Both the position numbers and the translations under genes were made by a program. The notes under the pieces are model-generated. The model was not told the origin of the DNA. It saw nothing but the letters and a program-made list of their open reading frames with translations, and did not search any database. DNA of 64,000 nucleotides, taken from NCBI GenBank assembly GCA_029953675.1, contig JAMWBK010000006.1:1-64000 (forward strand), written 5' to 3'. This document shows, piece after piece, positions 1 to 32,100 of the stretch. Within the stretch, counting starts at the first letter, position 1, and the number at the start of each line of letters is the position of its first letter. Origin of the DNA: Rhodosorus marinus CCMP1338 (Eukaryota > Plantae > Rhodophyta).

Positions 1-299
1 GAGTAGTGCTGCGGGGTCGAAGGGCATTTACGCAAGTGGGCGAGTGCCGCATTTAATTTGAACAGTCCAATCCCCCAACTCTCCTGCCGAGCTCGATATC
101 GCCTGCAGAACACGAAACCTCCACCGTAGTCGTCACGACAGAATTTCACAAGTGTCGAGCCACCGTCATCGCTGTTGTGGGAGAAGGTCCCGAGATCGAA
201 AACTTCGGTGCCTTCGATTTCTAGCTGCAGATTTTCCACACTTACGATGGCTGAATTCCCTGGTCCACCTTTCTGCTCTAATCAAGGGCTCACAGATTT

Positions 300-3200: not shown

Positions 3201-3599
3201 TACGTGAACTACCCGTAGTGTATTTAAGATCCAATCTGATGTTGAGCCCCTGTGACGACGGATTGTAAATTCAAGCTAAAACGTAAAAATGTTTAATTAA
3301 TATTTATAATATATGAAACAATGCAGTTCGTGGTTGTCCAGAGGGGGTGGAAGAGGAATATTCCTTTTTCGGGAGAACTGTCAGCCGCTGGAAGTGCGGG
3401 AAATTCAACCATTGTGCTGAATTGTGTTAATAATTCGGAGACACATAATGTACGCGCGCGTTTATTGATGATGCATGATTAACAATTCGTCGGGTCTGAT
3501 GAGGGAGATGGGGTGGTGGTGGTTTTACTGGGCTGGGATTTACTAGATGTATCATTAATTTGAGAAGTCCCTGCCTGTGGCGGACTAACAGAGGGAAGA

Positions 3600-6500: not shown

Positions 6501-8335
6501 CGCGTACCACGATGACGTAACATTGCTGGGCACCCCTGACACCCTGGTTAGGGACTGACCGCGATCGAAGCGATTGCACGTCGCGTCGGTTTGACTGCGG
6601 AAACAGAAAAATGTCGCTTTCTCCCCCGAGGGACGTGTCGCTGAACTCTCTGCCACCCACTCTGCGACTAATCAGCGCGAACGTGAAGGGTTCGAACACC
6701 ACGGCGTCGGATTGGGGACTGACAACTTTGTCCAAGCATCCTGCGAGCGAGTTTTGGCACGGCACAAGCAACTCACCGACGCCATTGAGCACCTACCCGA
6801 CAGCATGCTGCAATCGGCCTGCTTGCTTTCCCGCTTTTGTGCCGGTCCCAGACTCAACTACTGGTTGCGCAGCCTGCCTCCAGCTTGGGGCTCGTGGATC
6901 GCGGCTAAAGCCGACGAAATGACCCTGCAACACTGGGGAACGCTCTTGGATGAGCCCCTCGATCTTGAAGCTCGTTCCCGACAGGGACTTTGTTCGTGCA
7001 CAGATCGCTCTACCGTTGCGATTAGGGGATTCGGCGTCGCAGACCGTGGGCTGGCATGCTCGCCAGCGGCGGTTGCCTCCTGGGCTACCGCGCTGCGAAC
7101 GTTGGTGACCTTCCGGATGCGAAGTGCCCGCCTCTTGGCTCGAGCTTTGACCAACGAGGATCCAGTGACCCTGCCGCCCCCGGCTTTGACAATTTATGAT
7201 ACCTCAACACGCGTTCAGGAGGTGCAACGCCGTGCCGGACGCAAATAGGTCCCGCTTTCGTTCCTGGAGGGAGCTGTTATGGGGACGAGCTGAAGCGATT
7301 GGAGGATTGTCCCCTCGACCGAGTTCTTGCCGATGACGGAGAAGCTAGCCCCGGGTCCCCTGTTGCAGACTACCCGGGTTTGAGCCGATTGTGGAGCTCC
7401 CGCACTGATGTGATTCAACATAGCCTCACCTGGGGCCAACACAGTGCTGCCTACACAGTCATGCTCAATTCTCCTCTCACGCCGCCTACCACTGCCGCTC
7501 GTCTCCGCGGCATGGGAGGCCACCTCTCGCACTTCCAGGTTAACCACTCTACCGTCGTCATTGAGTCATCGTCTCGATGCTTTCCAGTTCCGTTCTGCCG
7601 CACGCATCTATCTCGGTTTGGGTTACAGGCTCTGTGGCACTCTAATCGGCCGTCTTTCTGTCAGGGATGAGAGAGCTTGATTGACGCTTGTGGGCTACCA
7701 CTTCCTGGGTTCCTGCGGACTGTTGCGAGGTCTCCGGCCGCAGGCGTCACACTCGCCTCAAGCACATCCTCAGCGAATTTTTGACTCGGATAGGGCATAC
7801 GGTTGAGGTTGAGTTTGAACCGCCCAGATCCATTTTCGACTCTGCACCGCCCCGTTGTATAGCCGATCTCCTCGTCTCCGACGCTGCTGCCAGACGCGCT
7901 CAACATATGTGGACCTTGCGATTACCTGCCCCGTGGCCAGCGCCCACCTCACCGCAGCCGCCTGCCGCCGGGGGCCGCGGCTTCAGCCCTCTTCGAAGAG
8001 TTAAGGGAACGACGGTATGCTGAGAGCATGGGCCATTCTGTTTGTACTGAGGGTCGCTCTCACCGGTTCCAGCCATTCATTGTGGAAAGCTTTTAACACG
8101 TCGATAAGTCTGGTTTCAGGAGTGGTTGCGGAAATGTTTTGCTGAGCATCCTACTGAATATTTGGCGCTCTTGAGGCGTTTAAGTGTCTCCCTTTGGCGA
8201 TATTCCAGCGACATGCTTTCCGAGGCGCGCCATCGGCGCCTGGGGTTGCATGCTTCCCTCCCTAGTTATTAGTTCATCTTCACGCCTTGCGTAGCGCTTC
8301 AGGCCATGCTAGTAAAGTCCAGTAAAGTCCAGTGG
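3600..8335 (+). mobile_element. Degenerate near-full-length CRE-like non-LTR retrotransposon, family B (copy B2), with ORF1 remnant
   Basis: RT pieces: CPGPSGLRTE, LRPIGMVE, QGVGFSGGCE, ADFRNAFNSVSR, GVQQGDPCGP, AYHDDV, RFCAGPRLNYWLR. RLE pieces lie at 7600-8300. An ORF1-like segment (AAAIHWLRIQRLERIL) lies at 4690-5130. Multiple stops; 5' end approximate. Confidence 0.88.
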
Positions 8336-8339
8336 TGGC

Positions 8340-9220
8340 AGTCTTGCTCAATTATCCCCTCACACTGCCTACTGCCGCTCGCTCCCGCGGCCTGGGAGGC
8401 CATCTATCGCGGGTGTGGTTAACTGCTTTGCCGTCGTAACTGGGACACCGCTTCGACGCCTTCCAGTTCCGCACTGCTGCAAAGATCTACCAGGGTGCCA
8501 CAAGTTCCCTGGCACTCTAATCGGTCAGTCTTTCTGCCACGGATGTGAGAGTTGGATTGACGCGTGTGGCTACCACTTCTTAGGTTCATGCGGACTGTTG
8601 AGAGGTCTTCGTACTAGGCGTAACAACACTCACCTCAAGTACATTCTCAGCGAATCTTTGACTCAGGTAGGGCATACGGTTGAGGTGGAATTGGAACTGC
8701 CCAGAGATCGGTCTCGGACACTGCAGCGCCTCGCTGCATCGCGTATCTCCTCGTCTCCGACACTGCCGCCAGGCGCTCAGCATATGTGGACTCGCGATCA
8801 CATACCCTGTGGCTAGCGCTCATCTCAGCTCTGCCGCCCGTCGCCGATGAGCAGCTGCTTCGGCCTTTCGCCGAGTGAAAGAACGACGGTATGCTGAGAG
8901 TGTGGCCAGTCTGCCTTGCGTGCAGAGGGTCGCTCCCACCGGTTCCAGCCTTTAATCGTGGAAATCTTCTTTTGGTCACGTGGAGAAGTCGAGCTTGGAG
9001 TGGTTGGTGAAAGGTTTCGCTGAGCATCCTACGGAATACTTGGAACTCTTACGCCGTTCAAGTGTCTCTCTGTGGCGATCTTCTAGAAAGCATGCTTGCC
9101 GAGGCGAAAGATCGGCGCCTGGATTTGCACGCTTCCCTGCTCTGGGTTTTAGTTCCCTTTCACGCCTTGCGTAGCGCTTTAGGCTATGCTAATAAAAACC
9201 AGTGGTTTTACTGGTTCTAT
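8340..9220 (+). mobile_element. 5'-truncated tandem copy of the family B 3' region (B3)
   Basis: Nucleotide similarity to 7457-8330 (CGYHFLGSCGLLRG, LKYILSE, EHPTEYLELLRR). Ends with AATAAA and a 7-bp hairpin (9197-9216). Confidence 0.85.
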
Positions 9221-9289
9221 TTATACATAGTGGGTTTTACTAAAACAGCTCGATGTCTACGCAAGACGTAAAAGGAAACTAGGGACTGG

Positions 9290-9790
9290 GGTGAAGAGCG
9301 ATGCGCAAACCCAGGCGCGATGGGCTCCTCGACACTTATGATTGCCGCGCGTCCGGCACCTATCTCCCTTCTGCCGCTCTCCGCTGGGGGCAGTAGCTTC
9401 CGTCCTTCGCCGCAGCAAGGAACGATGGTACGCCGAGAGCATGGGCAGCCTTTCCCAGGAAGGTTCGGCGGAAGGGCAACAATGGCGGACGCTAATCGAC
9501 CTAGTAACTTGGAATACGCTACTATAATTTTGGCCCTGGCTTCTTAGCTGTATACTAGCCGAGGCTCCTCAATGGCGCCTTGACTTGCAAGCATTTGTCT
9601 TCACTATCTTTCGCGCTACGCCCTGAGTCGCCCGTTGACGTTGTGTTCGTAAAAACAACGCCGAACTACCTGTAGTTTATTCTCCGTTGGAAGTTAAGTA
9701 GTCTTCCATGATTCTAAGAGCAATTGCGAATCCCCCGGCTTCTGCAGAGGAATGAGCGTGTTTATAATTCGGGGACATCCTTGACGCATA
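9290..9790 (+). mobile_element. Short, more diverged 5'-truncated family B 3' fragment with 3' UTR (B4)
   Basis: Matches the family B tail (KERWYAESMGSL, ...ggcgccttgacttgca...). Its 3' end runs into degenerate C-strand telomere-like sequence. Confidence 0.7.
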
Positions 9791-9846
9791 CCCGCTAACC
9801 CCACTCCCGCGACTAACGTACTTACCCTGGAGCGGTGAAGTCACCG

Positions 9847-10223
9847 TAACGTAACCCCAGACTAACGTAACCCCAGACTAACGTAACCCCAGACTAACGT
9901 AACCCCAGACTAACGTAACCCCAGACTAACGTAACCCCAGACTAACGTAACCCCAGACTAACGTAACCCCAGACTAACGTAACCCCAGACTACGTAACCC
10001 CAGACTAACGTAACCCCAGACTAACGTAACCCCAGACTAACGTAACCCCAGACTAACGTAACCCCAGACTAACGTAACCCCAGACTAACGTAACCCCAGA
10101 CTAACGTAACCCCAGACTAACGTAACCCCAGACTAACGTAACCCCAGACTAACGTAACCCCAGACTAACGTAACCCCAGACTAACGTAACCCCAGACTAA
10201 CGTAACCCCAGACTAACGTAACC
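9847..10223. repeat. Tandem array of a 16-bp telomere-like repeat (CCCCAGACTAACGTAA)n, G-strand GGGGTTACGTTAGTCT; ~23.5 units
   Basis: Directly visible near-perfect array with one 1-nt deletion near 9991. It is strand-asymmetric (G4 run on the minus strand) and contains GGGTTA. Degenerate units lie at 9795-9827. Telomeric function is inferred. Confidence 0.95.
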
Positions 10224-10301
10224 GCGTACACTTTACTGAAGAACTCCCTATTGGAGCCCATTAAGAAGCAATAAGGATCCTATTGGTCAGCAAAGAAACC
10301 C

Positions 10302-13300
10302 CTAATGGGTTGTGTGGCTACGTTCTAAGATAGGGACGATGTCATAGTCTGCTTCGTCGACACGACGTGCCTGGGTGGCAAGGATAGCGTTTCCTTTCCA
10401 CAAAGTGCGGTTCAAGATCGCCCGAGCCTCACTTACTTGCGTTGCCCGCTGATCCAGGTGTATAGTCGCTTCCTTGAGGAACTCACTCGCTTGTTGTCCC
10501 ATCTGCCCAAATGTTTCCAGGCAGAAGGGGACGAAGATGTCGTCGTTATGTTCTCCGATACTGTCACGGTATTTGGACTCTTTAAACTTTTCCGCTTTCC
10601 GTGCCGCATACCCGGTCTCCCAAGACGCTTTGTGGAGGTGTGTTCTTTGCAAAGGCGAGGTCACCTTCACATCGATCACGTAGAGCTTGCCTGTTCGTGG
10701 GTGTCGGGCTAGAATGTCAGGCCGAAGCCGACTGCCTTGGTAGTGTCCGGTCGGTTCTATTGTCACTTCTAGTCGCCATTGTCTCAGCACTGTCGCCAGG
10801 GCGTCCCTGACCATGTTATGCCGAATTGTCCAACTGCCGGTAGAGCTGGTGCAGTGGTGAAGGCGTTGAATGCCTGCAGCGTCGTGTGGTTGGGAACATA
10901 TCGTACACGTACCAAGTATTCGTTCCACCCGGCAGGGGTAATCCCAACAGTTGTCGAAGGCTCAGGTTCAGTTCTCCGCTACTTAGGCCGCGTCCGTGTT
11001 TCCTTGGCAAGTCTCGCAGCCAAGTACCCCTCCTGATCCCTTGCAGGAGCGTATTCGCGCACGTGCCGTCTCGCTGATCTCCGCGTTCTCCACCATTTCC
11101 TCGAATGCCCGTCGGTGACTCCAGTTGGAGAGGAGTTTTTGGGTTGAACCGATCAAGGGCCTGTCGGGTGGTGTGTGCGGGTTCTCTGCTTGTTCTTGGC
11201 TCTCCAACGATTGCCATTCTGTTAGGCGGAGTATGGGGGCCGGTGTTCCTCGTGCCAGGCAGCGTTTTGAGTGGAGGCTCGCTTCGATTAGTTGTGCTCC
11301 AAGTTGATCCGTCGAGTGGAGCAGGGGTCGAATGTGATGGTGCTCGGTCAGGTTCGTCGATGTGCAGGCATCGAGTAGCGCTCCTAGGTGGCTAGATCCA
11401 GTCCAATTGAGCTTCAGAGTCTGTCGCCAACTGCTGAAGAAGGCGAGGGGTTGTATTCGTGTTCTCATCGCTAGGCCTGCGCCACCCCATCGGCAAGGGA
11501 GCTGGATCTGCGCTTCGACCACGTCTTTTGCGGGTCCTGTGAGGCCCTGGCCTTCGAGGAGCGAGCCGCACAGTTTGTCGAGTTCCAGGAGCGAGATGCG
11601 ATCGGCTTCGCGTGCGAGATTGGCTCCGTATTGTAGGGCGAGCGTGCGTAGAGCAAAGTCTAGACGCGGTCCCGGTGCGCAGTAGCGGAATAGGCACAGT
11701 TTAATTGGTAGCTCAGTGGTCGGTAGACGGATGACCTCTTGGACGAGTTTTTCATGTTCTCGTTGTAGCTTCCTGTTCGCGTCTTGGACGTAGGTCCGTG
11801 TGCCAATAGGGATGGAATAAAGTTGGATTCCGTCCCGGGTGACATGTACGTCGGGAATTTCCCTGTTGACGAGTCTGGTCGTCGGCAGTTGGAGTCCAAA
11901 AAGCTCGCATTTCGTCCTTTGAAGTTGTGCGCCTATTTCGGGGAGGTGGTGCTCGCTCCAGTGTAGCGCTTCTTTCACGTCCTTCAGAGGGCCAAGTAAG
12001 GTGAGGTCGTCGTGGATTGCGCTAAGGGTGATCCTCGGAAACCGGTCTCGTAGTGCTCGTAGGAGTGGGGAAAGGGCGAGCGCGTGTAAAAGCAGGTCCC
12101 AACGGATCGCCTTGTTGGACTCCAGTCCAGGCTCGGAGCTGGAGCCAGTCATCGACATCGCTGTCTCGCCATCCGAATTGGCGTGGGGCGCTCTCGCCTC
12201 GTGGTCCGTAGCTCATTGTCATAAGCGACTTCAATTCGGGGAAAGCTAGCTCGATGATACGGTTTGCGAGGCGTCGGTCGATTCTGTTGAACGCGTTTGC
12301 GAGATCAAGTTTGAGGAGCACGTCATTCGGGCGCGCTGCGAGGTGGGCTTCCGCGAGGTGGATGGCGTGTTCGCAGCCGCCGCTGACCGAGATGCCGAGT
12401 TGTTCCGGGAGCAGAAAGTCGCGAAGGGGCGTGGCGACAGCGCGAAGTGTCCATTGGGTGACGGCCTTCCGCAGTACCTCAGGAATCCCTAGCGGGCGTA
12501 GGCGAAGAGGGTACCCTTGTCTAGCTTCGGCAGACGTTCGCTTGTCTTTCGCGAGGAGTCGGTTGCTGCGCATGGCTTCGAGAAACACGTCAGGGAAGCT
12601 CTCCGGAGTGGTGGCAAGCTTGCGAAGGAAGCGTACAAGTACCGGTTGCGTTGTCATGGTGAGACTTCGCAGATGTTCGGCTTTGAGTCCACTCGGCCCG
12701 GGGGCTGTGGCGTACGGTAGGTGTTCCAGCGTTGACAGGAGGCTCTCGTCAGAGGCCAAAGTCGGGTCCCATATATTGCGTTGCAGTCCGTTGAGCTTTG
12801 CCTGTAGGGCGTCTTCAAGCTCCGAGGAGAGCGTTGCGGCCTCGTACTCAGGGAAGAGCGTAGTCAGAACGCGCCAGGTGGCAGGAGTCTTCGAGGCAAG
12901 ATCGGTGGCCAGTAGGAGTTGGCTAGACTGGGACATACGTTGAGCTTTGGCGAGTTGTAGGGCTCGTTTCTGTCGGTGGCGGGTCTGAGGCGGCGGAGGT
13001 ACGATACACTTGGTGTCAAGGGTTTTGCTGTGAGCAGTAAGGTGTTCCCACACCGTGGAGAACCTTCCGTCCATAACGGCGAGCATCTGCGCAGAAGGGG
13101 CCAGGTCGCCTGTGTAGCCGAGTGCGAGACTGGGGAGAGCGAAGATGAACAGGCGTGACAGGTTCGGCGCTGACGTATCAAGGGCAAGTTCCAGGGCTTT
13201 CGACATGAGATGGTTCCAGCGTGTTTTCAGGTTATCGGGGACGAATTGGCGAGTAGGCGTCGGAGCCTGAGTCAGCTGCCACCAGCGGTTGCCATTATCG

Positions 13301-13458
13301 GTTACGTTGAGAGTGAAGTCGTGCAGAGACGAGAGCCAGGCGTTCGAGTCGGTCTCGAAGAGTGACTGCGTCGAAGTGGGAGGTCGTTGGCGACGAGCAC
13401 GAGCACGGCGGGATGAGCGAGAGCGGTTCGGAGTATATTCGTCTGAGGAGCTGCTCAT
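10302..13458 (-). CDS. ORF2 of A1: reverse transcriptase + CCHC zinc knuckle + restriction-like endonuclease (~1051 aa after correcting three 1-nt indels)
   Basis: RT motifs: APGPSG, LRPLGIPEVLRK, QLGISVSGGCE, LDLANAFNRIDR, GVQQGDPLGP, IHDD. Knuckle: CTIC...HHC. RLE: RHN...RPD...IDVKV...KESKY. Frame breaks at ~12090, ~11030 and ~10928, each in a homopolymer. Confidence 0.9.
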
Positions 13459-14974
13459 GATTGAGTCGACGAGAGGGAGTCGGGCGTGAGGTCGTCGACG
13501 GCGTTGGCAGGCTTAGGGCGCTTAGTGGGTGGAGCCACTTGTCTCTTGTCTTGGGCCGTCGAAAGTCCTTGCATCGGCTCTGCAGGGGTCACTGGTTGAT
13601 CGCTAGTGGTGGAGGGGTCAGGCTCCGAGTCTAGTGGATCACGGGCTGTCGCGGCAGGCGTCTCAGGCGTGTTGTCCTCCCGAGCGGCTGGGACTTGGGC
13701 AGAATCAGCGCTATGCGTAGTCGCTGCGAGGGGTTCCGCACTCTCCTCTCCAGTGCCGCCGGTTGAGGGTCAGCTACCCGGGTTCGGTCCAGAGAGCGTG
13801 GCTCTCTGCGCTCGGTTGTTGTCGAGTGCTCTGGAAGCTCAGGGTCGGAGAATGGCACGCGCAGGCAACTGTCGGGTGCTCGTTGAGCGTGAGCGTGGAG
13901 GCTGGCCAGGGTGCGATCGAGCTCGGCCCTGACGTGGCCCAGGAGTGCCTCTCGGTTGTTGGGTGGGAGACTCCTGCGATTTGTAACAATCCGCTGGATC
14001 CGTCGGTAGCGGAGCAGGTTGTGGATCAGTGCAGCGCGGGGATAGTCTGCCGGTTGGTGACGGAGCTTTTCCCTCATGCTCAGGTATTCGTGTGACGTTG
14101 GAGAGAGCTTGACAGCTTGGATACGTTGATCAGGAGGCAGGTGTGCTCCTCTGGTGGGTTCGAAGGCCCCTGCGTTGGTAGCGTCGCGGAGTAGTTGGAA
14201 GGCGGTATGATGAGCGATGACGTGTACATGATGATCAAAGTAGTCCAGCTGGAGCAGCGAATTTTTCTGAAGGCCGGCTAGGCGCTCGATATCCCAAGCA
14301 TGATGGGCCTTGCTTCTGGTGGAGTCCCGAGGTCGAGCATTGAGTAGCACAAATGCATCAACGTCCTTCTGGCTCTGGTACTGCAGCCCATGAATGCTCG
14401 CGAAAAACGAGCGATTGGCAGCTGCTGGGGTCTGGTTGGCGCGGACACGTGTCGTCCAGCTCATTGGTTGAGGTTGAGCTCGAGTCCTTGTCCGTGCTTG
14501 CTCATTGGCCGTTGCGAGATCTGGGAATGCATTGGAATCGAGATCACGTGTCTCGGGAGATCGCGGGCGGGCTGCTGCAGTGGCGTAGTTTGCTGGTTCG
14601 TAGACAGGGAGGGGGCGTTGTGCCCTCGGGGCAGCTTTGTGTGGCGTCGTAGTCAGATTGTGAAGGAGTTGAGCCTCGGTGCCATTGGCGTGTGCCTGGG
14701 CTAAGAGACCCATAAACCGCAGCATAAGCCCATTGTAGAGCGGGGTCTTATGCTTGGGCGCGTCGAGATGCAGCTTCAGCGCTCCGCAGCTCAGGTCAAT
14801 AGCCAAGGGAGTAGGTACGTCGTTGTCAAGTGCAGATGCAGTTGTAGGCTCAGAAACAGGTACGGGCAGAGGCTCGGGTCCGTCTGCCCTCAGGCTAACG
14901 GCCGGGAGGTCTTCCATCGTTGCGTCTGTGCAAAAGCCCCCCCCATCCGGAGGCACGGGCTCGAGAGTAGTCAT
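13455..14974 (-). CDS. ORF1 of A1, unknown domain with acidic/Pro-rich tail and NLS-like PPTKRPKP (~506 aa after one 1-nt correction)
   Basis: ATG at 14974, open to ~13770. A single added C in a CCC run joins it to a frame ending TGA at 13457-13455, which overlaps the ORF2 ATG. Homologous segments occur in other copies. Confidence 0.7.
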
Positions 14975-15042
14975 ATCACTCGATAAGCGTTCGTGGAAAG
15001 AATGAAAGTGTAACTTTATCACCACGATAAACTCCAAAGTCC

Positions 15043-15087
15043 AACCCCAGACTAACGTCAACCCCAGACCCCAGACTAACGTAACCC
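15043..15087. repeat. Short telomere-repeat tract (variant unit, 7-bp CCCCAGA duplication, canonical unit) at the A1 5' junction
   Basis: Sequence reads aaccccagactaacgtc aaccccaga ccccagactaacgtaaccc. Confidence 0.92.
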
Positions 15088-15570
15088 GCGCAGTATGCAG
15101 ATTGCTTCCAGAGAATTGAATTCAGATTACATGAAAACCCGAATGACTGGGCTTTGACTTTTAGTTGTTATGAATATTGTACTAGCTCAAATCGTCGTGC
15201 AGGTTCATCGAATCCAGTTTGAAGCTGCCATGAATCCATCCAGTCTCCGTCTCCTGTATATTCGGGCAAATTCGAGGTGAGTGATCTTCGGAAAGGCCCT
15301 GCTTCAGGCTCCATGCAAGGACACTGCTGGCGTCATCTGGTTGCGTCGGTGCTTTGCGGATCAACTTGGTGCTTGGCACACTTCCAATCCTTTCTTAGTT
15401 TAGCCCTTTCGTGGAGCACAGCCATCCATGTCCTTCCGAGGGTGTGTTCCTTTCGTGGAGTGTATTGCTGTAGGTAGCCCTCTAGTAGAGTTCTCGACTC
15501 CGGCCAGGGGGTTCCACTTTGTTATGTAATAAGTTATACTGGACGTCTTGATACTACGTTCTTCTTGGGT

Positions 15571-15663
15571 AGGCAGCTGCCCAGTAAAGTTTACGGTTAC
15601 GTTAGTCTGGGGTTAGACGTAGTGTTGCGCTGCAGTAGGCAGCTGCCCACTAAAGCTTACGGT
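15571..15663 (+). mobile_element. 93-bp insertion: two minimal family A 3'-end fragments separated by one telomere unit, GGT duplicated
   Basis: Absent from the paralogous site at 31761-31779 (cttctggggttgcggcacc). The fragments match the A2 3' UTR at 25586-25640. Confidence 0.92.
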
Positions 15664-17229
15664 TACGGCACCTTCAACACAAGTGAGCGAAGCACGAGCG
15701 ACGCTCAGCCGGTCCCGGTGGAAAGGGAATGCACTGCTTGCCACCCAGGCTCGCCGAATTGACGAAGGGAGCTATGACATCGTTCCTCTAGTAGAACGTG
15801 GCACGCAACCCATTAGGGTTGTTTTTAGCGCGTAGGTAGATTCCTTATTCGCTCTTGATGGGCTCCACTAGGGAGCTCTTCGGTAGAGCATTCACGGTCA
15901 CAGTTAGGTTATTTATTTTGGACGTCGCATCAGGACCAGATCATCGGATCGGAACCAGTTCAATCCGTCGTAGGTCGGCTCTTGGGTAAATTCAAATGGA
16001 CATGATTCATGGTCCATGGATCACTGCTAGACGCGTATATGACAATGTGCTTGAATTTTGGGGAACTATTTCGAGCCCAGCTGAGGCGAAAGCAAGTAGC
16101 TGCGCTGTTGGCTGTGAGCGCATTGGCTCTACCTTTCAGTGGGAATAATCAACAGGGGATTTTTTTTTTTTTTCAACTTCCGGTGGAGCAGACGTGCAAC
16201 TCAAAAGGCCCAGGTGGACCGCTTGGGACAGGAAGAACCCACCCTAGCCCATATCACCCAAAACCGGAGGTTCCCACTAACCGTTGTCGAATCCGCATCC
16301 CACGGAAATGGAACCCAATGGGCTACCGCACAGCAAGAGTTCCGTAGGTTGCCGAGCTCGGCAACCCACACTCTCACCTAGGGACTCGCGCTCAAAAGCT
16401 CGACCGTACGTGTCCGAAGGTTTAACCGAGGACGGATCGGACACGGTTGAGCTCTATTTCGACCCACAATCTCGATCTCGTCCCCTGTACGTGTCTAGAA
16501 TAAGCATGCCAGCACCAAGTCTTGACTAGTCTGGGGTTACGTTTGCTTTTGGCTTCCACGATGCGAACCTGTGGAACGTCAAGAGCGGCGAGCTCTTGGA
16601 CTCGAGCAGAATCTCAGTTTGTGCCAGTGCTGAGTTTACGCTAATCTGGGGTAATTACCTTCACGAGAATTTCTTTTCGCAGACGAGATGCAGAGACCGC
16701 GGGACAAAATAGTCATAGATGAGATATAGCAATCAACAGAATCACCCACTCACTGGCGGGTCGAATACAGAACCCATCTAGTCTCAGTTGAAGATGGCGA
16801 CTGGTGTTTATACCGCTGCTTTGCTGAACTAAGTAAGCGTGAGCTTGGGGGGCCAGGGTGGTGCTCCTGTCACTTAAGCAACCCCTCGTGTCCCCTGAGG
16901 TTAGCCCTTTTTCCTGGAAAGTGCGTCAACGTGAACTCTGGATTGGAACACTCAAATTCTTAAGCCGAAAACTCCGCCAGTGGTCGCTGGCAACCTCAAA
17001 ACTCAGCTCAAGCAAAGACTCAACCCCTCTAACCGGTTCGTCTAGTCCCGGCTGCAAGTGTTCAAACTCCCGAACCGAGCACGTCCTGAAAGGTCAGACA
17101 GCCCACACATCTGGATTTTTGTCTCCGAGAAAAGAGGAATACAAGACGTTACCTGAATTGGAAAACCGGGGCTATTCCATTATGGAGAGTAAGATGTGAA
17201 TGCAGGGCTACGAGTTTTAGGAGGCTACT

Positions 17230-20200
17230 ATGGCATCTCATGCTAACAATCTGAGAGCCTTTTCTGTTCCACGGAATGTACCGCTTGATGACAAGAAGGA
17301 CCCAGCGGACTTGTATATCGTGCATGACTCACCAGCCGATGATCCTGAAAAGATCTCGGAGGAGCTCGTTCTCAATGATACGACGGTGATCTCTGGTCAC
17401 GCAGAGTGGAGGAAGGTTTGGGAATTTGACAGTTGCATCAAAAATGGTTCTTCCGTGAACACCTCGAACTCAGGAGGACATTCGAACCTGGCGGTGAACG
17501 TTAATTCCGGCGGAGTTGCACGAATAGCAAGCACAGTGGTGAGAAGCTTTTTGAGGTTGAATTGTGACTGGGAGAGCGGAAAATATTGCGAACCGTGGGA
17601 AAAGAGGGTAATTCACTGACACCGTCGTTTCTCCTTGCGGTCGCCAATCGTGCAAGTGCAGTCTGAATTGAGCAAGAGGAGACCACGTGGTTTACGCTTT
17701 GTTTTGAAAGAACGGGACGACACTACGTTCTCTGAGCAATTAGCCTTTCCTCTGCAAAAGCCGAGCGTCAACATTGCGTTCGAGGAGTTTCTCCTCAGGC
17801 TTGCTCGAGGTACAGATTGCACTGGCGAAATGAAGTCCAAGCCTTCGGACGCTTGAATTTGGTTAGGTAATGCTCTTCAAAGCTTCTTCGTTAATCGTCC
17901 AATTTGCCTGTGTTCCCTCTTCTGTGGCAGGTCCATGTAAGGCCGTTTCAAAAGATGTTCCATTGGGGCCGGCCATATCCAGATCCGTAGGGAAGACCTT
18001 AGAAATGATGATGGAAAAGAACATACCGCCGCAGGCGGCTGTCTGGTTTCTTAAGGTGGCCATACTGAATGAATTGCCCAAAAAGACGAGGTTGAGATCT
18101 CACAAGAGGACTTGGGGAATCCCCCTCTTCAACGACCGGAGCTCTAAGCTACCCATCCTTTGTTTCTCATATCATGCCAGACCTGACAAACCGCCGCCGT
18201 TTGCGAAATGGCTCTGGTTTAAGCTGGCATCGGAGCACTTCCGGGCCCAGCTAGAGTCATACCGCGCTCTGAGCGTATCACCGCAAACGTCCGCATCAAA
18301 GTCTAACCAGTGGGAGTACTTTCTGAGCATTTTGCGCTTCCAGGCTGATGAAGGTAAGGACTCCGTTGCTAAAAAAAGTTGCTTTTACTACGATCTCATT
18401 TGCAAATTATTCTGCATGGAGTAGAGGGACGGTGACGTCCTCATCTTGCTTTCTGAACTTCGGTTCTGCAATAGGCCTCCTCGATGAGTTGACCCTAGTG
18501 GGCCGGCTTCTGTTCGTAGAGCTTCGAAAGGAACTCCAGACTGACTATGGGGAAGACGAACGCCCTAGTTGTGCATTAGTTTTTCAGAAGCAACTTCTTG
18601 ATATGCTTCTCGGTGCGATGCAGGAATTCGAACCTGAAATTTTGGCGTCCCGGGAATCTACGGTGGCCCTCAATCAACTTTTGAAAACAGCAATGTCTCC
18701 CACTTCGGCTCGTTTCATCCCTTTCCGAAAACGCTTGTTACAGGTCTCCAGAACCACTAACAAACGTCTTCTCGAAGCAGATTGCCTAACAAACTCGCAG
18801 GTATGCCAAAACAGAGAATCGAGATGGTCGGACTGTATCTTATTTTGCATCGTCGAGGAGTGATTCCCTGGTGTCACAAATGTGTGCTTTCCGACCTCTT
18901 ACCTTTTGTTCTTTCCTCCAAAGTTGTTGCTAGGAGACGATCAGAATCCAGGAACACCTAGATCTCGTGGACGGAATAGAGGAATGGTTTACGACCGTGA
19001 TGCTTTTCACAAGAAGATGCTGCTCCTTGGCTGCCTAACGAAAATGGCTTGGACTGGCAACTTTTCCGAAGCTGTTGAGCTCTGCCAATCTGCTTTCAAC
19101 ACTACTACTGCTGCCGTGCGCTTTCTTGTTAAGTGGACCCTCTGTGGTACAACATCCACATGCCCTCTCGCCGGGCTAACGTACGTACTGAATCGCAACT
19201 ACCCGAAAGACCGAGAGTCCTGGTTTTCGAGAATTCTTCGTTCCTGGAGGAGCTACTACGTTGAGAGTTTTAACAACCTCGTCCACGAATATCCCTTCCT
19301 GGCTGGTATTCTGACATTTGCCTCCGTATCTTGGACACAGGGCTGGCTCTGTGATTAGACTATTGGAAAAGGCTAAGCGAACGAGACGTCAACGGGCACA
19401 AGGTAGATTCATGTTCCAGAGACCAATTACTTCTGAAGTAGAAGTATGCCTGTCAAAGGGGTTGGCGGAATGTGACGCCGCAGTAGAATTTCTCCTGCAC
19501 TTGAGCAGCGTTGAATGCATTTCAATTAGTAACTATTTGAAGTACATCAGAGCGGGCCTTGCGAAGGCGCCAAAGTTACATGGAATTGGAGAGGACCTGG
19601 TGAGGCGATTTCCGGAGACTATGGATCGCAACGCAACGCTTCGAAGGCAAATACTCAAGAGCTTAGGGGTTGATAACATGGAGGTGGGTGGGGGAAGGAA
19701 GAGTGTTTCTGGGAGTCCTCTATGCTTCAATTCATAGGATCGAGATCCGATTCGCAACGTGCACGCTGAGCAAGAGTCTTCTGTCCTGATGTGTAGGCAA
19801 CTGTGACCTACGATCCAAGCGTCATCGAGCGGGTGCTTTCAAATGATCTAGTTTCTGCGAGGGCCGCGGGGAAGGAGCTGAGGAAGAGACATGGCCTTTC
19901 ATCGAGACTGACCCATTGTGACATCGCTGTCAAGGTATAGAAGTAATTGTGAACAGCCCTGGTTGGAACAGATTTTCCCACCAAACCCGAACAGTCTCTG
20001 AAGATCATGATTGCTGCTCATCATTTGCGGAACACTTGCAGTGCGGAGAGGATGTGCGCGTTTCCGTCTTGGTGTCCTTTCTTCTGGAGGCGGGAGCCTA
20101 CCGTACAGCTTCATCGTTTCTTGTGGACATGCTGAAACACGTTGAAGAACGCGGCGACGCTATAGATAAAGCTGATATCATTAGTTCTCTCTCCGGCATG

Positions 20201-21931
20201 GGCCTACTCTTCAGTGCAAGAGGAGATCTTGATTTGGTCATGGACCTTGCAATGAACTGGTCAAAAAGTGAACCCCAGGCTGTGCAGAGGTAATGCATCG
20301 TCTAGGAACCACATCAAATATGCTCCTTACGACAATCTCCACTATCGTTGTTTCCTTGTGCTGATTGTTCACATTCTGTCACGGACAGACTTTTGGGTGC
20401 ACTCGCCATCTCGTTCAAGGACACGTGAGCATCCTGGAAAAACTACGTTCGAAACGGTATTCTACGAGGTTTGTCGTCCTCCATGGCTCGCGCGTTACGA
20501 GGTGAACATGTCAACATAAGCTCGTCCGCGGTATTAGAGCAGTACCTTGATGCGGGCATAGACATCTCTAGCGCAATCCAAGAACTTGGCGATTCGCGAA
20601 GAACTCTTGAGGAATTTATTATACCGCTTGCCAAGGTAGGTGCAGAGATTGCAATGGAGAGAGCTGATTTCCACGTTCCCTCATTTGTTTGAATGGAAAC
20701 TACTGGTTCTAACTGAGTGGCTGTGACCGACTGGAACGCGTCCCAATGGACTAGCTCCGAAAGTCTGTGTGCGTTCCTAGCGAGATTCTTGCGTTCTTTG
20801 CAAGCGGATGCTCTCCCTCGACTGCGCTCGAACTACTGAACGTTATCATGCAGTATGGTCTCGAAGCCGCGGAAAAAGTTGTACAGCATCCGTTCCTACG
20901 AAGTGCGGTTCTATCCGCAGGTCTTCCAGCCGCCCTATCGCAGCACGCACGTCCCGGAGGAAATCCTGAAGCTATTCATCAGAAACCAGAGGAATCCCAG
21001 CAGGCAACTATCAGCTGTCGACGTGGTTAAAAACGCGAACATATTCAACGGCAACCTCTTTGCAATGTGGCTGCAGCTCGAACTGCAGAGAACAAGTTTG
21101 ACGACTTCGGAGGTAATGCGAGACAACTGGCACACGTGGAAGCGTTGTACTGACACGGTTTTCTGCGTTGCAGGTGGACGCTCTGGCTGCAGAAATCATG
21201 GCGCTTCTCGTAGAAGACAAGAGCATAGAGCCTTTGATTTACGACGTCCTGATCAAACCCGAGTCCTTGCGACTACGTGAAAGATTCTTGTCCATCCTGT
21301 TGACAAAGTTCAGCTCTGGATTTGAAGGCTTAATGGTCTCATCATCGGTACGCAGCCGCAAAATGACGTCGACATTTTTCAATGGCGATGTCAGTGAGCG
21401 CTAGCGGATGGCATTGGTGATTTTCTTGCTCAACCGAAACTCCTAAATTCTGACTATGGCACCCAGGAGACTTTGAACCGGTCAACGGAAAGGCTCGCTG
21501 AAGTAGACTACATATGTTTCAAGTTGCTGAAATATTTGAGTTTTCATTCAGAAGTACACGTTGACTTTGAGCTTGTACAGGAGGACATGATAAAACAGTT
21601 GAAGCAGATCAAGGAGACCCTGGGGAACGTCTTGCCGGAGAAGCTTATGCACCACAAGTATGTTGGCAAGGCAGTGTTGAGGCGGATCGAACTCCTTCGA
21701 GGGGCTGGGTTCGATGGCCTCGTGGCGAACTCCACGGAACTCTTGCTACAGACGTTGGAGGTGGTTGTTCCGGCACTGGAGGAGTCTGAAGTTGAAGACA
21801 TTCTCAGCGCAATCCAGGGATCGGAAAATCTGACGACGGAGGGAAAGGAACGTGATGAGACGGGATTGAAAAGAAGGGTACGTTCTGTCATGAAGGTTGT
21901 GAATTTTGTTCAAACAACATGTACTTCGTAA
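17230..21931 (+). pseudogene. MED12: MED12 (Mediator kinase-module subunit) pseudogene, distal copy
   Basis: Paralog of 33348-38052. It has a nonsense change (TGA at 20426-20428 vs TGC), a 4-bp insertion near 20948 and a 1-bp deletion near 21420. Confidence 0.75.
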
Positions 21932-22770
21932 CCGCAGAGAGAACGCTATTGAGCGAGAGCCTACGATACTGCTCGGCGGACCAGTATCCTCGTTATTCTA
22001 TTGACAAATGGCTTCTTTTTCGTCGCCGGCCGTGGCTCTTAATGTAATTGCTAATCATCTTTGTCCCAGGTTGTCACTTCGAATGTACATTTTTGGCTAT
22101 CCGCCAGGCAGAGGTTGATTCTTTGCTCTTCTTTTGCCGTGGCACGGGGAATGAACGGTGCCTACCGTCGAAGTATTGTCGCCTTTGCACCTTCCGAGGA
22201 GGCCCCAGCCAAACGGCGTTTATTGGACAATTGGAATCTGCTAGAAGGCCAGGGCCTGGATGCAACCATGAGCACGCCAACGTTCGGAATCCAGATAAAA
22301 GGGGACTCAAAGCCAGTGCGCTTCTTGAAGAGGTATTCCTCATCGTATGCCTCGCTTTCTAAATAAGCACGGTGTGGAAATAGGAAAATAAGAGCACTTG
22401 CGACCCGGACGGCTAAACTACTATCAGAGTGACCACGTACCTGTCCAGGGATTTGTTGATGTTGCGTCCTCGAGTTAAATTGGTCCGGAGTTAGGTTCAG
22501 ATACTGCTGGTCGTGCGCTGGTGCCCGATGGAGAAAGCCAAACTGACCCGGGGTTGCCCTTCGAGAAGAGGTCCCAAGTTTCTGTTTGACGGCTGAAGAC
22601 TTATCATGAAGCTGATTATATACATATACGGAACTGGGCCTTAGAGGACCAGCAAAACGTTTGACAGTGGTGATCGTGCCGTGTGCAAAGGATACTGAGC
22701 ATTTTGTCTATACAGTCGAATTTTACGGAGATTGACTAGGATCGTGATCGCCGACATTGAAAATCTGCCT

Positions 22771-25640
22771 TTCAGATGCAGCTCGAAGCCTACAGGCCAC
22801 CGAAATGGCACCTTTTACCGCGGCTACGTGGAGACAACTACAAGCGCTCTTTCCCAACCCGGCAGAAGGTGACATACCAGACGAGATTGCACACGCCCTG
22901 CAATCTTTGCTCGCTCTGAATACCGAAACACTAAAGCGGCGGTGGGATTCAAGAAAAACTGCCGACGAGGGCCTCATGTCGATCGTGGCACGTCTTCCTC
23001 AGGGCAAGAGCCCAGGTCCTAGCGGTATCCGAGCGGAACACCTCCAAGGTGCAACTCAACAGACGCAAGTGGCGTTGATTCGTGTATTGCGACAACTGGC
23101 GACCGCTCCTGAGAAATTTTCCCCGGCTCTGACCCGCGCCCTTCGCAGTAGTCGACTCCTGCCGTTCGCGAAGCCTAAGAAGGGTTCAGTGCCGCAGGAA
23201 CATCCCGGAGTTCGCCCTATCGGAGTACCAGAAGTTTTGCGCAAGGTAGCAACGCAATGGACTCTTCACGCGGTTATGGACAGGGTGCGTGAGCTGCTGG
23301 TGCCCTTACAACTGGGTATTGGAGTAAGTGGCGGGTGCGAACGCTCACTTCACTTGATCCAGGCCCATTTGTCATGCGAACCCGATTCGGTGGTCCTTCG
23401 GCTAGACCTAGAGAATGCCTTTAATCGCATCGACCGACGCCTTGCCAAGCAACTGGTGGACGAACACTTGCCGGAGCTTGCACCAGTGTATCGACTTGGC
23501 TATGGAAGCGACAACGCGGACTCACCGACGCTCTGTGGCTGGCGATCTTCCCCGGGACAGAACGAAACCGACACCTCTCGCCTGACTCTCCAAGCAACTA
23601 CAGGAGTCCAACAGGGAGATCCACTGGGGCCGGTGCTACATGCACTATCCCTGGCGCCCTTTCTAAGAGCGTTGCGAGCCAAGTTCCCCAACGAAACGAT
23701 TGTTGCTATCCACGACGATATCACGATTGTCGGGCCGCTACAAGCCTTGAAGGCATCCCGGGCATGGGGAAAAACTGTGCTCCCCTCTCTTGGAGCACGC
23801 CTGCAACTCGGCAAGTGCACTGTGTACGGGCGAACACTGACTACCACGCGAGTGGTCAATCATGAGATTCCTGGAGTGCAAGTGACCAGAGACGGAGTCA
23901 CCATCCACTCGATACCGATAGGCAGCCGAGAATATATCGAACAGGAGTGCCGGGGGCTGCAAAATAAGCATGAGAAACTCTTTGAGCAAATTGCCAAGCT
24001 CCCACAACCGGAGCTTACGACGCAAATTGCCCTCTTCAGGTTCTGTGCAGAAAGGCGACTAGACTATGTGCTACGATGCCTCGCATACGAGTTTGGAAGA
24101 AATCTGGCACGCGAGGCCGACGTGATGACCAGATATCATCTGGAAATTCTATTCGGAGGCCTCGCTACGACAGCTGTAGAGGACGATGAGTACGCAGAGC
24201 TGATCTCGGACCAAATCGCTCTGCCCTGCCGCTGGGGAGGTTTGGGTTTCGCTACTCGAAAGCGCGTCCAACCCATCGCGTTTTACTCGTCATGGAGAAA
24301 CACCTTCCGGAACAATGAAGATGAATGGCCATACCTGACTGAACTGGACTGGACTTTACTAGCATAGGCTGAAGCGCTACGCAAGGCGTGAAGATGAACC
24401 AATAACTAGGGAGGGAAGCATGCAACCCCAGGCGCCGATGGCGCGCCTCGGAAAGCATGTCACTGAACTAGAGCGGGAGGTTACGGCAGAACGCTCACCA
24501 GACACATACGAGCCGACGGAGCAACGATGGTCGACTGCACAGCTGGCAGAACAGATCTGTGCATCGTCGCGAGCAATACAACGGAGGCTCGGACCAGAAG
24601 CCCCGCCGCGGATCTTGGCACTGACAACCCTGCAACAACCGCGAGAAACATCTCTTCGAAGCGCCCCGGGCGAGACTGCAGCTTGGAATAATGGTTCAAT
24701 ACAACAAACCCTCTCTCGAGAGGCACACCATTGTGCATTCCAAAAGCTGGTCACCAACCCACGAATCTCCCCTGAAAACCGAGCTCGAATACGGTCTGCC
24801 GCGGGATCCGAGTCGGGAGTCTGGCTGCGTGAAATACCAACGCTGACACCGAAAAAATTGAGTGCGGTTGAGATGCAGGTAAACGTTCGACAACTGCTGG
24901 GTCTGCCAATTCCGGGATTGCGCACCACCGAGAAGTGCACTAGTTGCCGGAGTAAACACGGAAGGACTGGGGTACAACGGTTTCATCACTGCCCAACATC
25001 AACTGGACTGTGGCAACGTCGGCATGACGAAATCTGCAGAGAGCTGACACGGTGGCTAAGGCGATGGAACTTCATGGACGTAGAGCAAGAACCCGAGGGG
25101 TACTTCGAGAACTACGGACTGCGACCTGATATCGTTGCTAGGCATCCGAGGACCAAACAAAGGTATGCGCTGGATGTGACGGTGGTGTCACCATTACAGG
25201 GAAAATATTTGCGGCTGAGCCAAGATGATAGCGGATACGCGGCGAGAGCTGCGGAGAAGTGGAAAATCGCTGACTACAAGGAAGCGATGGTGATCGAGAA
25301 ACCGGATGACAAGCTCATCCCGATAGCGATAGAGACGTTTGGGCGTACGGGGCAAATGGCACAAGAGTTCCTCCGCGACAGCTGCAAACACCTGCTGCAC
25401 AGGAGTGAGGAGCTGAGAGACGTGAGATCCCAGATAAACCGGCAACTATGGCGAGGTAACGCGGAGATAGCATTAGGCGCTTTGCGCGTGGACCAGCTGG
25501 AGAACCCGCTGGTGCCTGTTTTTTCTTTTGAACGTAGCATGAGACCCCGGTAGCGGGGTTCCAGAAAGTTTTTCCCTAGATAGGATTAGACGTAGTGTTG
25601 CGCTGCAGTAGGCAGCTGCCCAGTAAAGCTTACGGTTACG
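22771..25640 (+). mobile_element. 5'-truncated family A element (A2): RT-CCHC-RLE with one frameshift, complete 3' end
   Basis: SPGPSG, VRPIGVPEVLRK, LDLENAFNRIDR, GVQQGDPLGP, IHDD, CTSC...HHC, RHDE...RPD...LDVTV. Frameshift at ~24362 and stop at 25553. The 3' UTR ends GGCAGCTGCCCAGTAAAGCTTACGGTTACG. Confidence 0.93.
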
Positions 25641-25649
25641 GTAACGGGT

Positions 25650-27452: not shown

Positions 27453-28300
27453 GGCTGCCGGAGTCATCTCCGTGTCATGGCCTTTGCCTTCCGCTGTCAC
27501 GCGTGCGCGTTTTTGCTGGGGAGGCTCCGGAAGGTTGTGCGGGAGCTCGGCGTGTGGATTTTCCTCTTCGGCATCCTCCTGTGGTAGTTGAGACGTAGCG
27601 CTGGAGTCACCCGAAGCGTCGAGGGTCCCGCGGGCTACCTGTGAGTCTCCGTGAGTCTCCGTGAGGAGTCGAGGCTTCTGGGGCTGCGTTTGTAGCGGCT
27701 GCAGTCGCAAGGGGTTCCACGCTCTCCCCGGCTACCGCTGGTGGATGTTGTAGGGCTCTTAACGCTGGTAGACGCTCTTCCAGTGTTTCATGGATGGCTG
27801 CGAGAGTAGAGAACGACAGATTCCTCTTTCCGAGCCTCGCGCGAATCCTGATGATCTGTTGTATGGCCCGGTGCAGCGTCTGGGCTGGGATATCCTCTTG
27901 GGCGATCCTTTGCCTTTAGTTGTAGCCCAACAGGTTGCCAGCCTCCAGTCCCTGTCCTGTGTGGAAAATCGCTTGCCGGTCAGGATGTCTCGGTGTGAAC
28001 GATCCAAAGATCCCTGTTCTGAAAACGCCTCTGGCGATAGCGCTCTGCACAATCGGGATTGCATACGGATGGCAGAGCAGGCTTGCGTGTGATGAGATGA
28101 AGTCCGCATGCGCGATGTGAGAGGCTGGGATTCCCCGCGCGGCGCATAGGACGGTGGTGAAGTCCGAAGGTGCCACATTATCCTGCCTTTGGGGGCGGAC
28201 GTTTCGAAGGGCGGCAAGGATCGGTGTGGTCTCTGGTCCCCAGATAGCTCCCTCCACCGTAGCGTGCAGCTGTCGCAGCGCTGCCTGCTGAGTCTGCCAG
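27453..28300 (-). mobile_element. Family A-like ORF1 fragment (C-terminal two thirds) with a nonsense codon
   Basis: ADFISSHASLLCHPYAIPIVQSAIARGVF matches A1 LDYFDHHVHVIAHHTAFQLLRDATNAGAF. GESVEPLATAAA matches GEESAEPLAATT, and there is an NLS-like PPQQKRARV. Bounded by telomere seeds. Confidence 0.72.
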
Positions 28301-28311
28301 CCCGAGACTAA

Positions 28312-28363
28312 CGTAAGCCGTAAAGGCTATTGGGGCAGCTGCCCAATAAAGGATACAGTTACG
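28312..28363. repeat. Imperfect inverted repeat made of two oppositely oriented family A 3' termini sharing the palindrome GGGCAGCTGCCC
   Basis: The plus strand reads gcagctgcccAATAAAggatacagttacg. The minus strand reads gcagctgccccaatagcctttacggcttacg-ttagtct. Confidence 0.75.
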
Positions 28364-28640
28364 ATAGGCTCGGGCAGCAGGATAGGGAGAGAGAGGGTTC
28401 TCGTGGCGGGATATATCTCAACGCTCTGTCTTCGTAACTGAACTGATGTGTGCGTTGAATCAGCTGATTTTAATCAGTCTCTTGGCTGACAGATGAATCT
28501 GATGTGTTAGTCCTTTTCCAGACTATATACTGAAGGAACGGAAGGCTCGTAACTTTCAAACGTCCCTCCCCCGTGGTCACTCTAGCCAGGGCTAGAGTGA
28601 CGCAGTTCATTCGCTTCTGAGAACTGATGATTTGGCCCAC

Positions 28641-31730: not shown

Positions 31731-32100
31731 AAGTTATACTGGACGTCTTGATTCTACGTTCTTCTGGGGTTGCGGCACCTTCAACACAAGTGAGCGAAGC
31801 ACGAGCGACGCTCAGCCGGTCCCGGTGGAAAGGGAATGCAATGCCTCCACCCAGGCTCGCCGAATTGACGAAGGGAGCTATGAGATCGTTCCTCTAATAG
31901 AACGTGGCACACATCCCATTAGGGTTTTTTTAGCGCGTAGGTAGATTCCTTATTCGCTCTTGATGGGCTCCACTAGGGAGCTCTTCGGTAGAGCATTCAC
32001 GGTTACAGTTAGGTTATTTATATTGGACGTCGCATCAGTACCAGATCATCGGATCGGAACCAGTTCAATCCGTCGTAAGTAGGCTCTTGGGTAAATTCAA

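Follow-up and report, generated by a model that had tools for sequence, protein, structure and literature searches.

Background

SART1Bm, one of the best-matching precedents for the elements described here, recognizes a target of 10-12 bp, and its repeat-like 3′ RNA pairs with the bottom strand and thereby sets the start of complementary DNA (cDNA) synthesis (PMC7265360). In the same study, 3′ transduction was reported for SART1Bm-related elements, short internal repeats were noted as possible targets, and SART1 and TRAS1 were described as inserting in opposite directions (PMC7265360). In the MoTeR elements of Magnaporthe oryzae, internal relics comprise an element 3′ terminus and a short telomere tract, and duplications start at the truncated 5′ boundary (PMC7367193). 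Here we analyze a relic of related composition in 64,000 nucleotides of the red alga Rhodosorus marinus CCMP1338 (contig JAMWBK010000006.1, positions 1 to 64,000; hereafter the window), in which two truncated 3′ ends of a retrotransposon family without long terminal repeats (non-LTR), separated by one unit of a 16-nt repeat, form 93 bp that are present in one copy of a segmental duplication and missing from the other.

The RepeatMasker table of the R. marinus genome paper counts 4036 LINE/CRE copies, which add up to 2.82 Mb or 9% of the genome (PMC10250338). By this RepeatMasker label, the elements, which combine a reverse transcriptase (RT) with a predicted restriction-enzyme-like (REL) endonuclease, are candidate members of the CRE clade (CRE1/2, SLACS, CZAR, MoTeR and Cnl1). 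Its youngest LINE/CRE families show about 1% divergence (PMC10250338), which indicates that the elements have been recently active. We propose that the 93 bp are probably the footprint of endonuclease-dependent target-primed reverse transcription, through which a severely 5′-truncated cDNA entered a relic of the repeat after the duplication had taken place.

Results

Structure of the filled and empty sites

A blastn-type self-comparison of the window placed both sites within a segmental duplication, in which 15090-15570 corresponds to 31290-31770 and 15661-22770 to 31768-38893 (copies 1 and 2, respectively). Global MAFFT alignment of the paralogs (15060-22800 against 31260-38925) yielded 95.2% identity and 35 gaps, the largest of which spans 93 bp (15571-15663, between 31770 and 31771) and is about seven times longer than every other indel of this 7.6-kb pair, the runner-up measuring 13 bp. 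The 93 bp are composed of a 24-nt element 3′ end (stub P1), a perfect 21-nt unit (GGTTACGTTAGTCTGGGGTTA), a 48-nt element 3′ end (stub P2) and GGT, and copy 1 therefore reads ...cttcttgggt/AGGCAGCTGCCCAGTAAAGTTTAC/GGTTACGTTAGTCTGGGG(TTA)/(TTA)GACGTAGTGTTGCGCTGCAGTAGGCAGCTGCCCACTAAAGCTTAC/GGT/tacggcacc (slashes mark junctions), with a left flank ending in ...acgttcttcttgggt. The final TTA of the middle unit (15613-15615) doubles as the start of P2, and P1 shares a GT microhomology with the flank at its 5′ junction. An earlier reading of this DNA from its letters alone (the sequence-only reading) had reported the 93 extra bp and the paralogous sequence at 31761-31779, both correct to the base, and its statement that TTAGTCT is absent from the empty site was borne out by direct reading of the paralog.

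Both stubs belong to the family of element B (Table 1), whose 3′ end reads ...AGTAAAGCTTAC followed by GGTTACGG. With its flanks, P2 (15610-15668) is 96.6% identical over 59 nt to 25583-25641, and P1 differs from P2 at two positions. The motif GGCAGCTGCCCASTAAAG occurs four times in the window against 0.01 expected, two of these occurrences being the stubs and one the 3′ end of element B. The GGT at 15661-15663 constitutes a duplicated target triplet, of which the empty site has a single copy and the filled site two, and to the right of the insert TACGG stands in place of the TGCGG of the empty site, a one-base difference (15665/31772).

Table 1. Positions of the features discussed, in coordinates of the window (RT, reverse transcriptase; ORF, open reading frame; UTR, untranslated region)
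Feature	Position	Strand	Remarks
Empty site, paralog copy 2	31761-31779	+	cttctggggt/tgcggcacc
Left flank	15541-15570	+	Degenerate repeat relic ACGTTCTTCTTGGGT (paralog ACGTTCTTCTGGGGT), ending at insertion point
Stub P1, last 24 nt of B-family element (AGGCAGCTGCCCAGTAAAGTTTAC)	15571-15594	+	One mismatch to element B 3′ end
Perfect G-strand repeat unit plus 5 nt (GGTTACGTTAGTCTGGGGTTA)	15595-15615	+	Not in empty site
Stub P2, last 48 nt of B-family element (TTAGACG...CCCACTAAAGCTTAC)	15613-15660	+	Match to element B 3′ end
GGTTACGG, canonical sequence after B-type 3′ end	15661-15668	+	Also 3′ of element B
A′, older 5′-truncated 3′ fragment of A-like element (C-terminal codons and 3′ UTR)	15669-15895	+	blastn, tblastn, alignment
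Relic repeat after A′ 3′ end	15896-15909	+	GGTCACAGTTAGGT; paralog 32001-32014 GGTTACAGTTAGGT
Element B, 5′-truncated 2.9-kb copy, family source of stubs	22771-25633	+	RT ORF and C-terminal zinc-knuckle/REL-endonuclease ORF
Element A, related family, longest copy (4.8 kb)	10224-15042	-	G-strand repeats on both sides of sense strand
Array of 23.6 near-perfect 16-nt units (GGGGTTACGTTAGTCT on minus strand)	9847-10223	-	Presumed telomere repeat, element target

These boundaries suggest that the 93 bp are very probably an insertion that postdates the duplication, and not an ancestral stretch lost from copy 2. Insertion is favored because the limits of the 93 bp are exact canonical element 3′ junctions with one extra GGT, because the middle unit is perfect (21/21) while the flanking relics shared by the paralogs are degenerate in both copies, and because TACGG, as opposed to TGCGG, reproduces the GGTTACGG that also lies 3′ of element B. 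The A/G difference would be expected if an RNA tail had templated the first bases of the cDNA. The unit, moreover, has its G strand on the + strand, which is the wrong way round for a healed end of this chromosome arm and the way expected of an endonuclease-driven insertion.

Nature of the target site

The empty site resembles the repeat over about 21 nt, with agreement at 17 of 21 positions (TACGTTCTTCTGGGGTTGCGG), and 31758-31773 of the paralog departs from the repeat unit by three mismatches. Downstream lies A′, which is common to both paralogs (the copy 2 counterpart occupies 31777-32000), aligns at 72.65% (blastn) with the terminal ~230 nt of element A (10213-10444, reverse-complemented), and encodes C-terminal residues of the element A ORF with 74% identity (tblastn, A4 amino acids 162-203). 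Its 3′ end reads ...cattcac/GGTTACAGTTAGGT. Judged from its sequence, the empty site is a repeat relic at the 5′ junction of this older truncated element and no chance match, and three element 3′ ends (P1, P2 and A′) are now stacked at one internal site. The sequence-only reading had elements hit a degenerate telomere-like site; its estimate that about 10 bp of telomere likeness suffice for targeting gives way to the longer match of a repeat relic. Scans of the whole window against Rfam and for transfer RNA genes returned no matches, and the target site is therefore not an RNA gene.

Further degenerate relics of the repeat, on the + strand, were observed in both copies at 16524-16546 and 16635-16652 (paralogs 32644-32665 and 32750-32765). 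Since the two paralogs have these degenerate relics in common, the 7.6-kb duplicated unit consists in part of repeat-associated sequence that was stacked long ago, its orientation being opposite to that of the array at 9847-10223.

The 16-nt repeat and the junction register

All five clear element 3′ ends in the window (5/5) meet the repeat in a single register, ...TAAAG-N2-4-AC(GC)/(G/A)GTTACG, and are followed by its G strand. Both stubs end ...TAAAG-YTTAC/GGTTACG, GGTTAC follows the 3′ end of A′ as well, and the same register recurs at the element 3′ end of L002, a contig from JGI sample 3300016967. At the 5′ side, the insertion site, element A and L002 are all joined at GGGGT to GGGGTTA. 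Repeat-like segments of at least 10 nt number 12 outside the array, against 0.8 expected.

On its sense strand, element A is flanked upstream by repeats (15087-15043) and downstream, directly 3′ of its end, by the array of 23.6 units (10223-9847). The upstream repeats, about 45 nt of the 16-nt repeat preceding its 5′ end, adjoin position 15088, the breakpoint at which copy 1 ceases to match its paralog and from which, read on the minus strand, GGGTTACGTTAGTCTGGGG... runs without a gap. This arrangement looks like a de novo addition of repeats to a broken end, into which new tract element A was then inserted.

The window is transposon-rich at its left and carries ordinary genes at its right, as would suit a subtelomeric region whose chromosome end lies on the left; the window itself includes no chromosome end. 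We infer that the 16-mer GGGGTTACGTTAGTCT is the telomere repeat of the species, with which the near-perfect array, the G/T-rich strand bias and the repeats directly on the 15088 breakpoint are consistent; alternatively, the array may be a tandem 3′ tail made by the elements themselves. The genome paper and its supplements do not state a telomere motif for R. marinus (PMC10250338), and a full-text literature search for the 16-mer retrieved unrelated primers only.

Several observations concern the repeat and the element ends more generally. A conserved A(A/G)TAAAG, which resembles a polyadenylation signal, lies 5-7 nt before all element ends (10231-10237, 15584-15590, 15650-15656, 25623-25629 and 28346-28352, as well as position ~4110 of L001 and ~2183 of L002). 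Cleavage 20-30 nt past this motif would land at the end of the first unit and might thus give the RNA a tail of one unit. None of the element junctions shows poly(A). A lone perfect unit, catGGGGT-CGTTAGTCTGGGGTTAC-ctgcc, sits at 42245-42270 in unique gene-side DNA with no element end adjoining. At 28300-28375, an inverted degenerate element 3′ end with a repeat unit (GCCCGAGACTAACGTAA...) faces ...GGCAGCTGCCCAATAAAGGATAC/AGTTACGATAGGCTCGGGC in a palindromic arrangement centered on GCAGCTGC, with arms of 17 nt that are 88% complementary, which may be a snap-back or foldback product.

Architecture of the elements

The RT ORF of element B (22757-24367) matches Pfam RVT_1 (E 4.5e-9), and the best PDB sequence matches of the RT are L1 ORF2p (1.6e-6) and R2. 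The second, C-terminal ORF has no Pfam match; in comparison with six homologues it shows the motifs C-x2-C...H-C, RPD, D-V and E..K..Y, with C173, C176, H190, C191, R235-P236-D237, D252-V253, E279, K282 and Y286 invariant. A structure model of this ORF, with a mean predicted local distance difference test score (pLDDT) of 50, has a core (68-81) of alpha-beta-beta-beta-alpha-beta topology, and R2 proteins take the first seven places among its PDB fold matches (E 3e-6 to 8e-4). A LINE-type RT that is followed by an R2-like linker, then by a CCHC knuckle and, as predicted in part from this model, by a restriction-like endonuclease identifies the elements as non-LTR retrotransposons of R2-like architecture. 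They lack LTRs and have a common 3′ end with variable 5′ truncation, the copies measuring 24 nt, 48 nt, ~230 nt, 2.9 kb and 4.8 kb. Folding of the RNA at the 3′ end of element B was no better than that of shuffled sequences (z = -0.18).

The nearest matches of the element proteins are MMETSP transcripts (P0001 and P0077) and a Rhodosorus marinus protein, and from the transcript matches it follows that the elements are transcribed. A homologue of the endonuclease ORF, with 43% identity, was also found in L005 (GCA_039819145.1, JBCBSL010000655.1), binned as 'Cyanobacteria bacterium J06638_22', which is probably eukaryotic (red-algal) contamination of a metagenome-assembled genome. Distal to the array, positions 1-9846 of the window form a patchwork of element fragments that includes RT-like segments at 893-2694 (-) and 5698-7101 (+) and a tandem pair, 7456-8323 and 8339-9203, with 77% identity; since its fragments lie in both orientations, this region is no simple head-to-tail terminal array.

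Origin of the middle unit

The L002 contig carries a B-like 3′ end (...CACAATAAAGCTTAC), then CGTTACGTTAGTCTGGGGTTA, and then a further element, 5′-truncated to about position 24193 in the coordinates of B, with degenerate units upstream of the first truncated element. Its 21-nt spacer (2199-2218) is the same as the middle unit of the 93 bp. L002 is probably a transcript, its sample belonging to a JGI series of what are probably MMETSP transcriptome re-assemblies. RNA-borne units are plausible because this contig independently shows a 3′ end, a 21-nt unit and a next element with equal spacer length, a layout that equally supports a simpler route, a single read-through template from a tandem donor. 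The sequence-only reading had postulated a telomeric 3′ tail on the element RNA or, failing that, addition by telomerase. The first of these is plausible given L002, but telomerase addition fits the geometry poorly, as the unit lies 3′ of a stub whereas telomerase would extend the GGGT-3′ end of the flank. A period-66 tandem duplication was considered as the origin of P1 and rejected, since the second copy would not run into the unit and the stubs differ.

Discussion

A proposed model of target-primed insertion

The anatomy of the 93 bp, the junction registers, the domain architecture of the elements and a contig that joins a 3′ end, a unit and a next element are all directly established. In the mechanism we favor, the elements would target the 16-nt repeat with their sense strand on its G strand, and their endonuclease would nick the C strand at a fixed register that the junctions suggest to be, on the G strand, ...CTGG^GGTTACG. 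The RNA 3′ end (...A(A/G)TAAAG-YTTAC and a repeat-like tail, GGUUACG...) would presumably pair with the nicked strand and prime the cDNA, and a cut of the top strand 3-5 nt downstream would generate the GGT or GGTT(A) duplication, most copies being 5′-truncated and joined at microhomologies of 2-3 nt. At 15570/15571 the target would have been the repeat relic at the A′ 5′ junction, and the cDNA would have amounted to only 93 nt, in which a repeat unit copied from RNA joined 48 nt from the 3′ end of one element to 24 nt from that of another.

Three routes could have produced such a composite. A read-through transcript of a tandem donor, in a manner akin to 3′ transduction, would require a single event; the RT might instead have switched to another RNA at its repeat-tailed 3′ terminus, using the TTA microhomology at 15613-15615; or two successive insertions may have occurred, the first of which brought a one-unit tail. 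The choice among these routes, like the nick positions, the RNA pairing and the polarity of the event, is inferred.

Several points weigh against this interpretation. The two positions at which the stubs differ mean that a single donor locus must carry both variants. As a whole, the structure model of the endonuclease has a low confidence (pLDDT of 50 on average; core 68-81). Just two copies of the locus are available, no outgroup having been found, and polarity is argued from the precision of the boundaries; the flanking differences (G>T at the left, A/G at the right) could be ordinary divergence, the local level of which is about 5-7%. The transcriptome origin of L002 is only probable, and L002 is ~70-80% identical to element B at the DNA level and so represents another family or strain.

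Possible self-seeding and one-unit tails

Under a strict self-seeding scheme, P1 would have arrived with a one-unit telomeric tail, and the fresh unit would then have been hit by an independent P2, so that arrays nucleate and grow internally. The scheme is plausible, and it accommodates the position of the unit exactly between the stubs in the canonical register, the sequence differences between the stubs (which imply different source RNAs or events), the recurrence of the 21-nt spacer in L002 and the stacking of the P1, P2 and A′ 3′ ends at one internal site. We nevertheless consider it unlikely in its strict form. The delivered unit is unneeded, as every insertion leaves the original GGTT(G/A)CGG half-site intact on its downstream side, where it is open to further hits; one composite template or a template jump gives the same DNA in one event; and the 21-nt spacer is seen in two examples only, while short interstitial tracts may be survivors, as data on MoTeR indicate (PMC7367193). 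Of the idea of the sequence-only reading that the delivered unit serves as the next target, it is borne out that the unit is new relative to the empty site, but such delivery is not required, since the old half, GGTTGCGG/GGTTACGG, survives each insertion.

A more specific possibility, which we regard as doubtful, is that the 3′ tail of element RNAs is fixed at precisely one repeat unit and that each insertion thereby plants a complete target. If this were true, even a 24-nt abortive insertion would do so, and internal arrays could arise from any relic, which would help to explain how a 'telomere-specific' family fills ~9% of the genome; the elements would also be the first REL-endonuclease telomeric family with the sense strand on the G strand.

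Ancestral presence and deletion as an alternative

The converse of an insertion is that the 93 bp are ancestral, belonging to truncated elements that had long been stacked in what was once a repeat tract, and that copy 2 lost them by deletion through GGT microhomology. An old stack did exist here, as A′ and several repeat relics occur in both copies, and the paralogs are separated by 35 indels, among which one adds 6 repeat-like bp to copy 2 (33278-33288) that copy 1 (17165-17172) does not have, so that gain or loss occurs in both directions. A deletion would, however, have had to remove exactly two stubs and one duplicated triplet on 3 nt of homology, all remaining indels are of 13 bp or less, and the perfection of the middle unit (21/21) contrasts with the degenerate relics in both copies. 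We judge this alternative to be quite improbable.

No third paralog copy is present within the window, and the region has no convincing ORF to serve as a search query. Scans of metagenome contigs for the 23-mer and the 18-mer of the repeat found nothing; L002 carries the 18-mer, and its sample therefore lies outside that collection. Element A was dropped as an arbiter of the ancestral base (G or A) at 15665/31772, its alignment being unreliable at the truncation point.

The second repeat-like indel between the paralogs merits description in its own right. At 33278-33288 copy 2 reads aaaaCTGGGGTTACGGctatt, where copy 1 reads aaaaCCGGGG, a 6-bp gap and then ctatt; the extra bp (GGTTAC/TTACGG) create a repeat match of 11-12 nt, the filled state being here that of copy 2. 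It could stem from an insertion that aborted after the tail, from patching by telomerase or from a deletion caused by slippage.

Break repair and telomerase as alternatives

The remaining alternative invokes a double-strand break at the fragile relic, repaired by capture of stray cDNA and/or by telomerase synthesis, with the element endonuclease uninvolved. Interstitial telomere tracts are break-prone, and relics in Magnaporthe that combine a 3′ end with a short telomere tract arise via end-joining (PMC7367193); purely repeat-like insertions without element sequence are, moreover, present in the window at 42253-42269 and 33278-33288. Yet both stubs resemble full insertions in that their orientation and register are canonical and a target duplication is present, both flanks continue in the paralog, and hence no chromosome end was involved. 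The G strand on the + strand is in addition wrong for the healing of a centromere-side fragment if the chromosome end lies at the left, and telomerase would have extended the GGGT-3′ end of the flank and not the 3′ side of a stub. Break repair thus appears highly improbable. A purely telomerase-made interstitial insertion was rejected for the 93 bp, whose unit is bracketed by element 3′ ends; such an origin may apply instead to 42253-42269 and 33278-33288.

Comparison with known systems

The closest relatives of target-primed insertion as we propose it are the systems of SART1/TRAS1 and of MoTeR/FoTeR/Cnl1, and the known mechanism of target-primed reverse transcription is left unchanged. Like SART1Bm and TRAS1Bm of Bombyx mori, the algal elements would insert into double-stranded telomeric repeats in an endonuclease-dependent manner and at a fixed register, and the sense strand of SART1 is followed by the G strand, as is that of the algal elements. 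SART1 and TRAS1, however, belong to the R1 clade, with an N-terminal apurinic/apyrimidinic (AP)-type endonuclease, a poly(A) tail and a 5-nt repeat as target, whereas the algal elements combine a predicted R2-like C-terminal REL endonuclease with a 16-nt repeat and have no poly(A).

An RT with a REL endonuclease, and short interstitial tracts between tandem copies, are features shared with the CRE-like telomeric LINEs MoTeR1/2 (Magnaporthe oryzae), FoTeR (Fusarium oxysporum) and Cnl1 (Cryptococcus). The '5′-flank duplication' pattern of MoTeR also has a counterpart here, as copy 1 has its right end (22770/22771, against 38893) at the very point where element B is truncated on its 5′ side. The fungal elements, in contrast, point their 5′ end toward the chromosome end and are followed at their 3′ end by C-strand repeats (TAACCC), whereas the algal 3′ ends are followed by the G strand. 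MoTeR relics have been read as tags of former chromosome ends joined by non-homologous end-joining, while both flanks of the algal 93 bp continue in the paralog, from which it follows that this relic formed in situ. A MoTeR-type tag of a former chromosome end was accordingly rejected as an account of the 93 bp, as homology does not stop at the relic.

A composite cDNA, extreme 5′ truncation and joins at microhomologies are likewise known from L1-type 3′ transduction and R2-type template jumping, except that the transduced stretch would in the alga be a repeat unit with a neighboring stub. Both 3′ transduction and template jumping are general properties of LINE reverse transcriptases. The Penelope-like Athena and Coprina elements offer another parallel, in that Gladyshev and Arkhipova reportedly described in 2007 telomeric repeats at their RNA 3′ ends that aid priming at telomeres. 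These elements have a Penelope-like/TERT-like RT and no endonuclease, are added at chromosome ends and show the opposite strand relation, whereas the algal elements encode an LINE-type RT and an endonuclease. Assignment of the algal elements to such endonuclease-deficient terminal elements was ruled out by the LINE-type RT, the R2-like endonuclease and the G strand after the 3′ end.

What this locus would add to the described systems is a red-algal family, a 16-nt unit, a SART1-like orientation in a REL-endonuclease element and an empty/filled pair preserved in situ. It suggests that the combination of a 3′ end and a short telomere tract can form in situ, beyond the tags of former ends proposed for MoTeR relics. 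It also hints at a target specificity not yet described for LINE/CRE elements, which are dominant in the repeat content of R. marinus, and it offers, for a red alga, an unusual candidate telomere repeat of 16 nt. In their orientation, the algal elements are the reverse of the fungal telomeric elements that carry a REL endonuclease.

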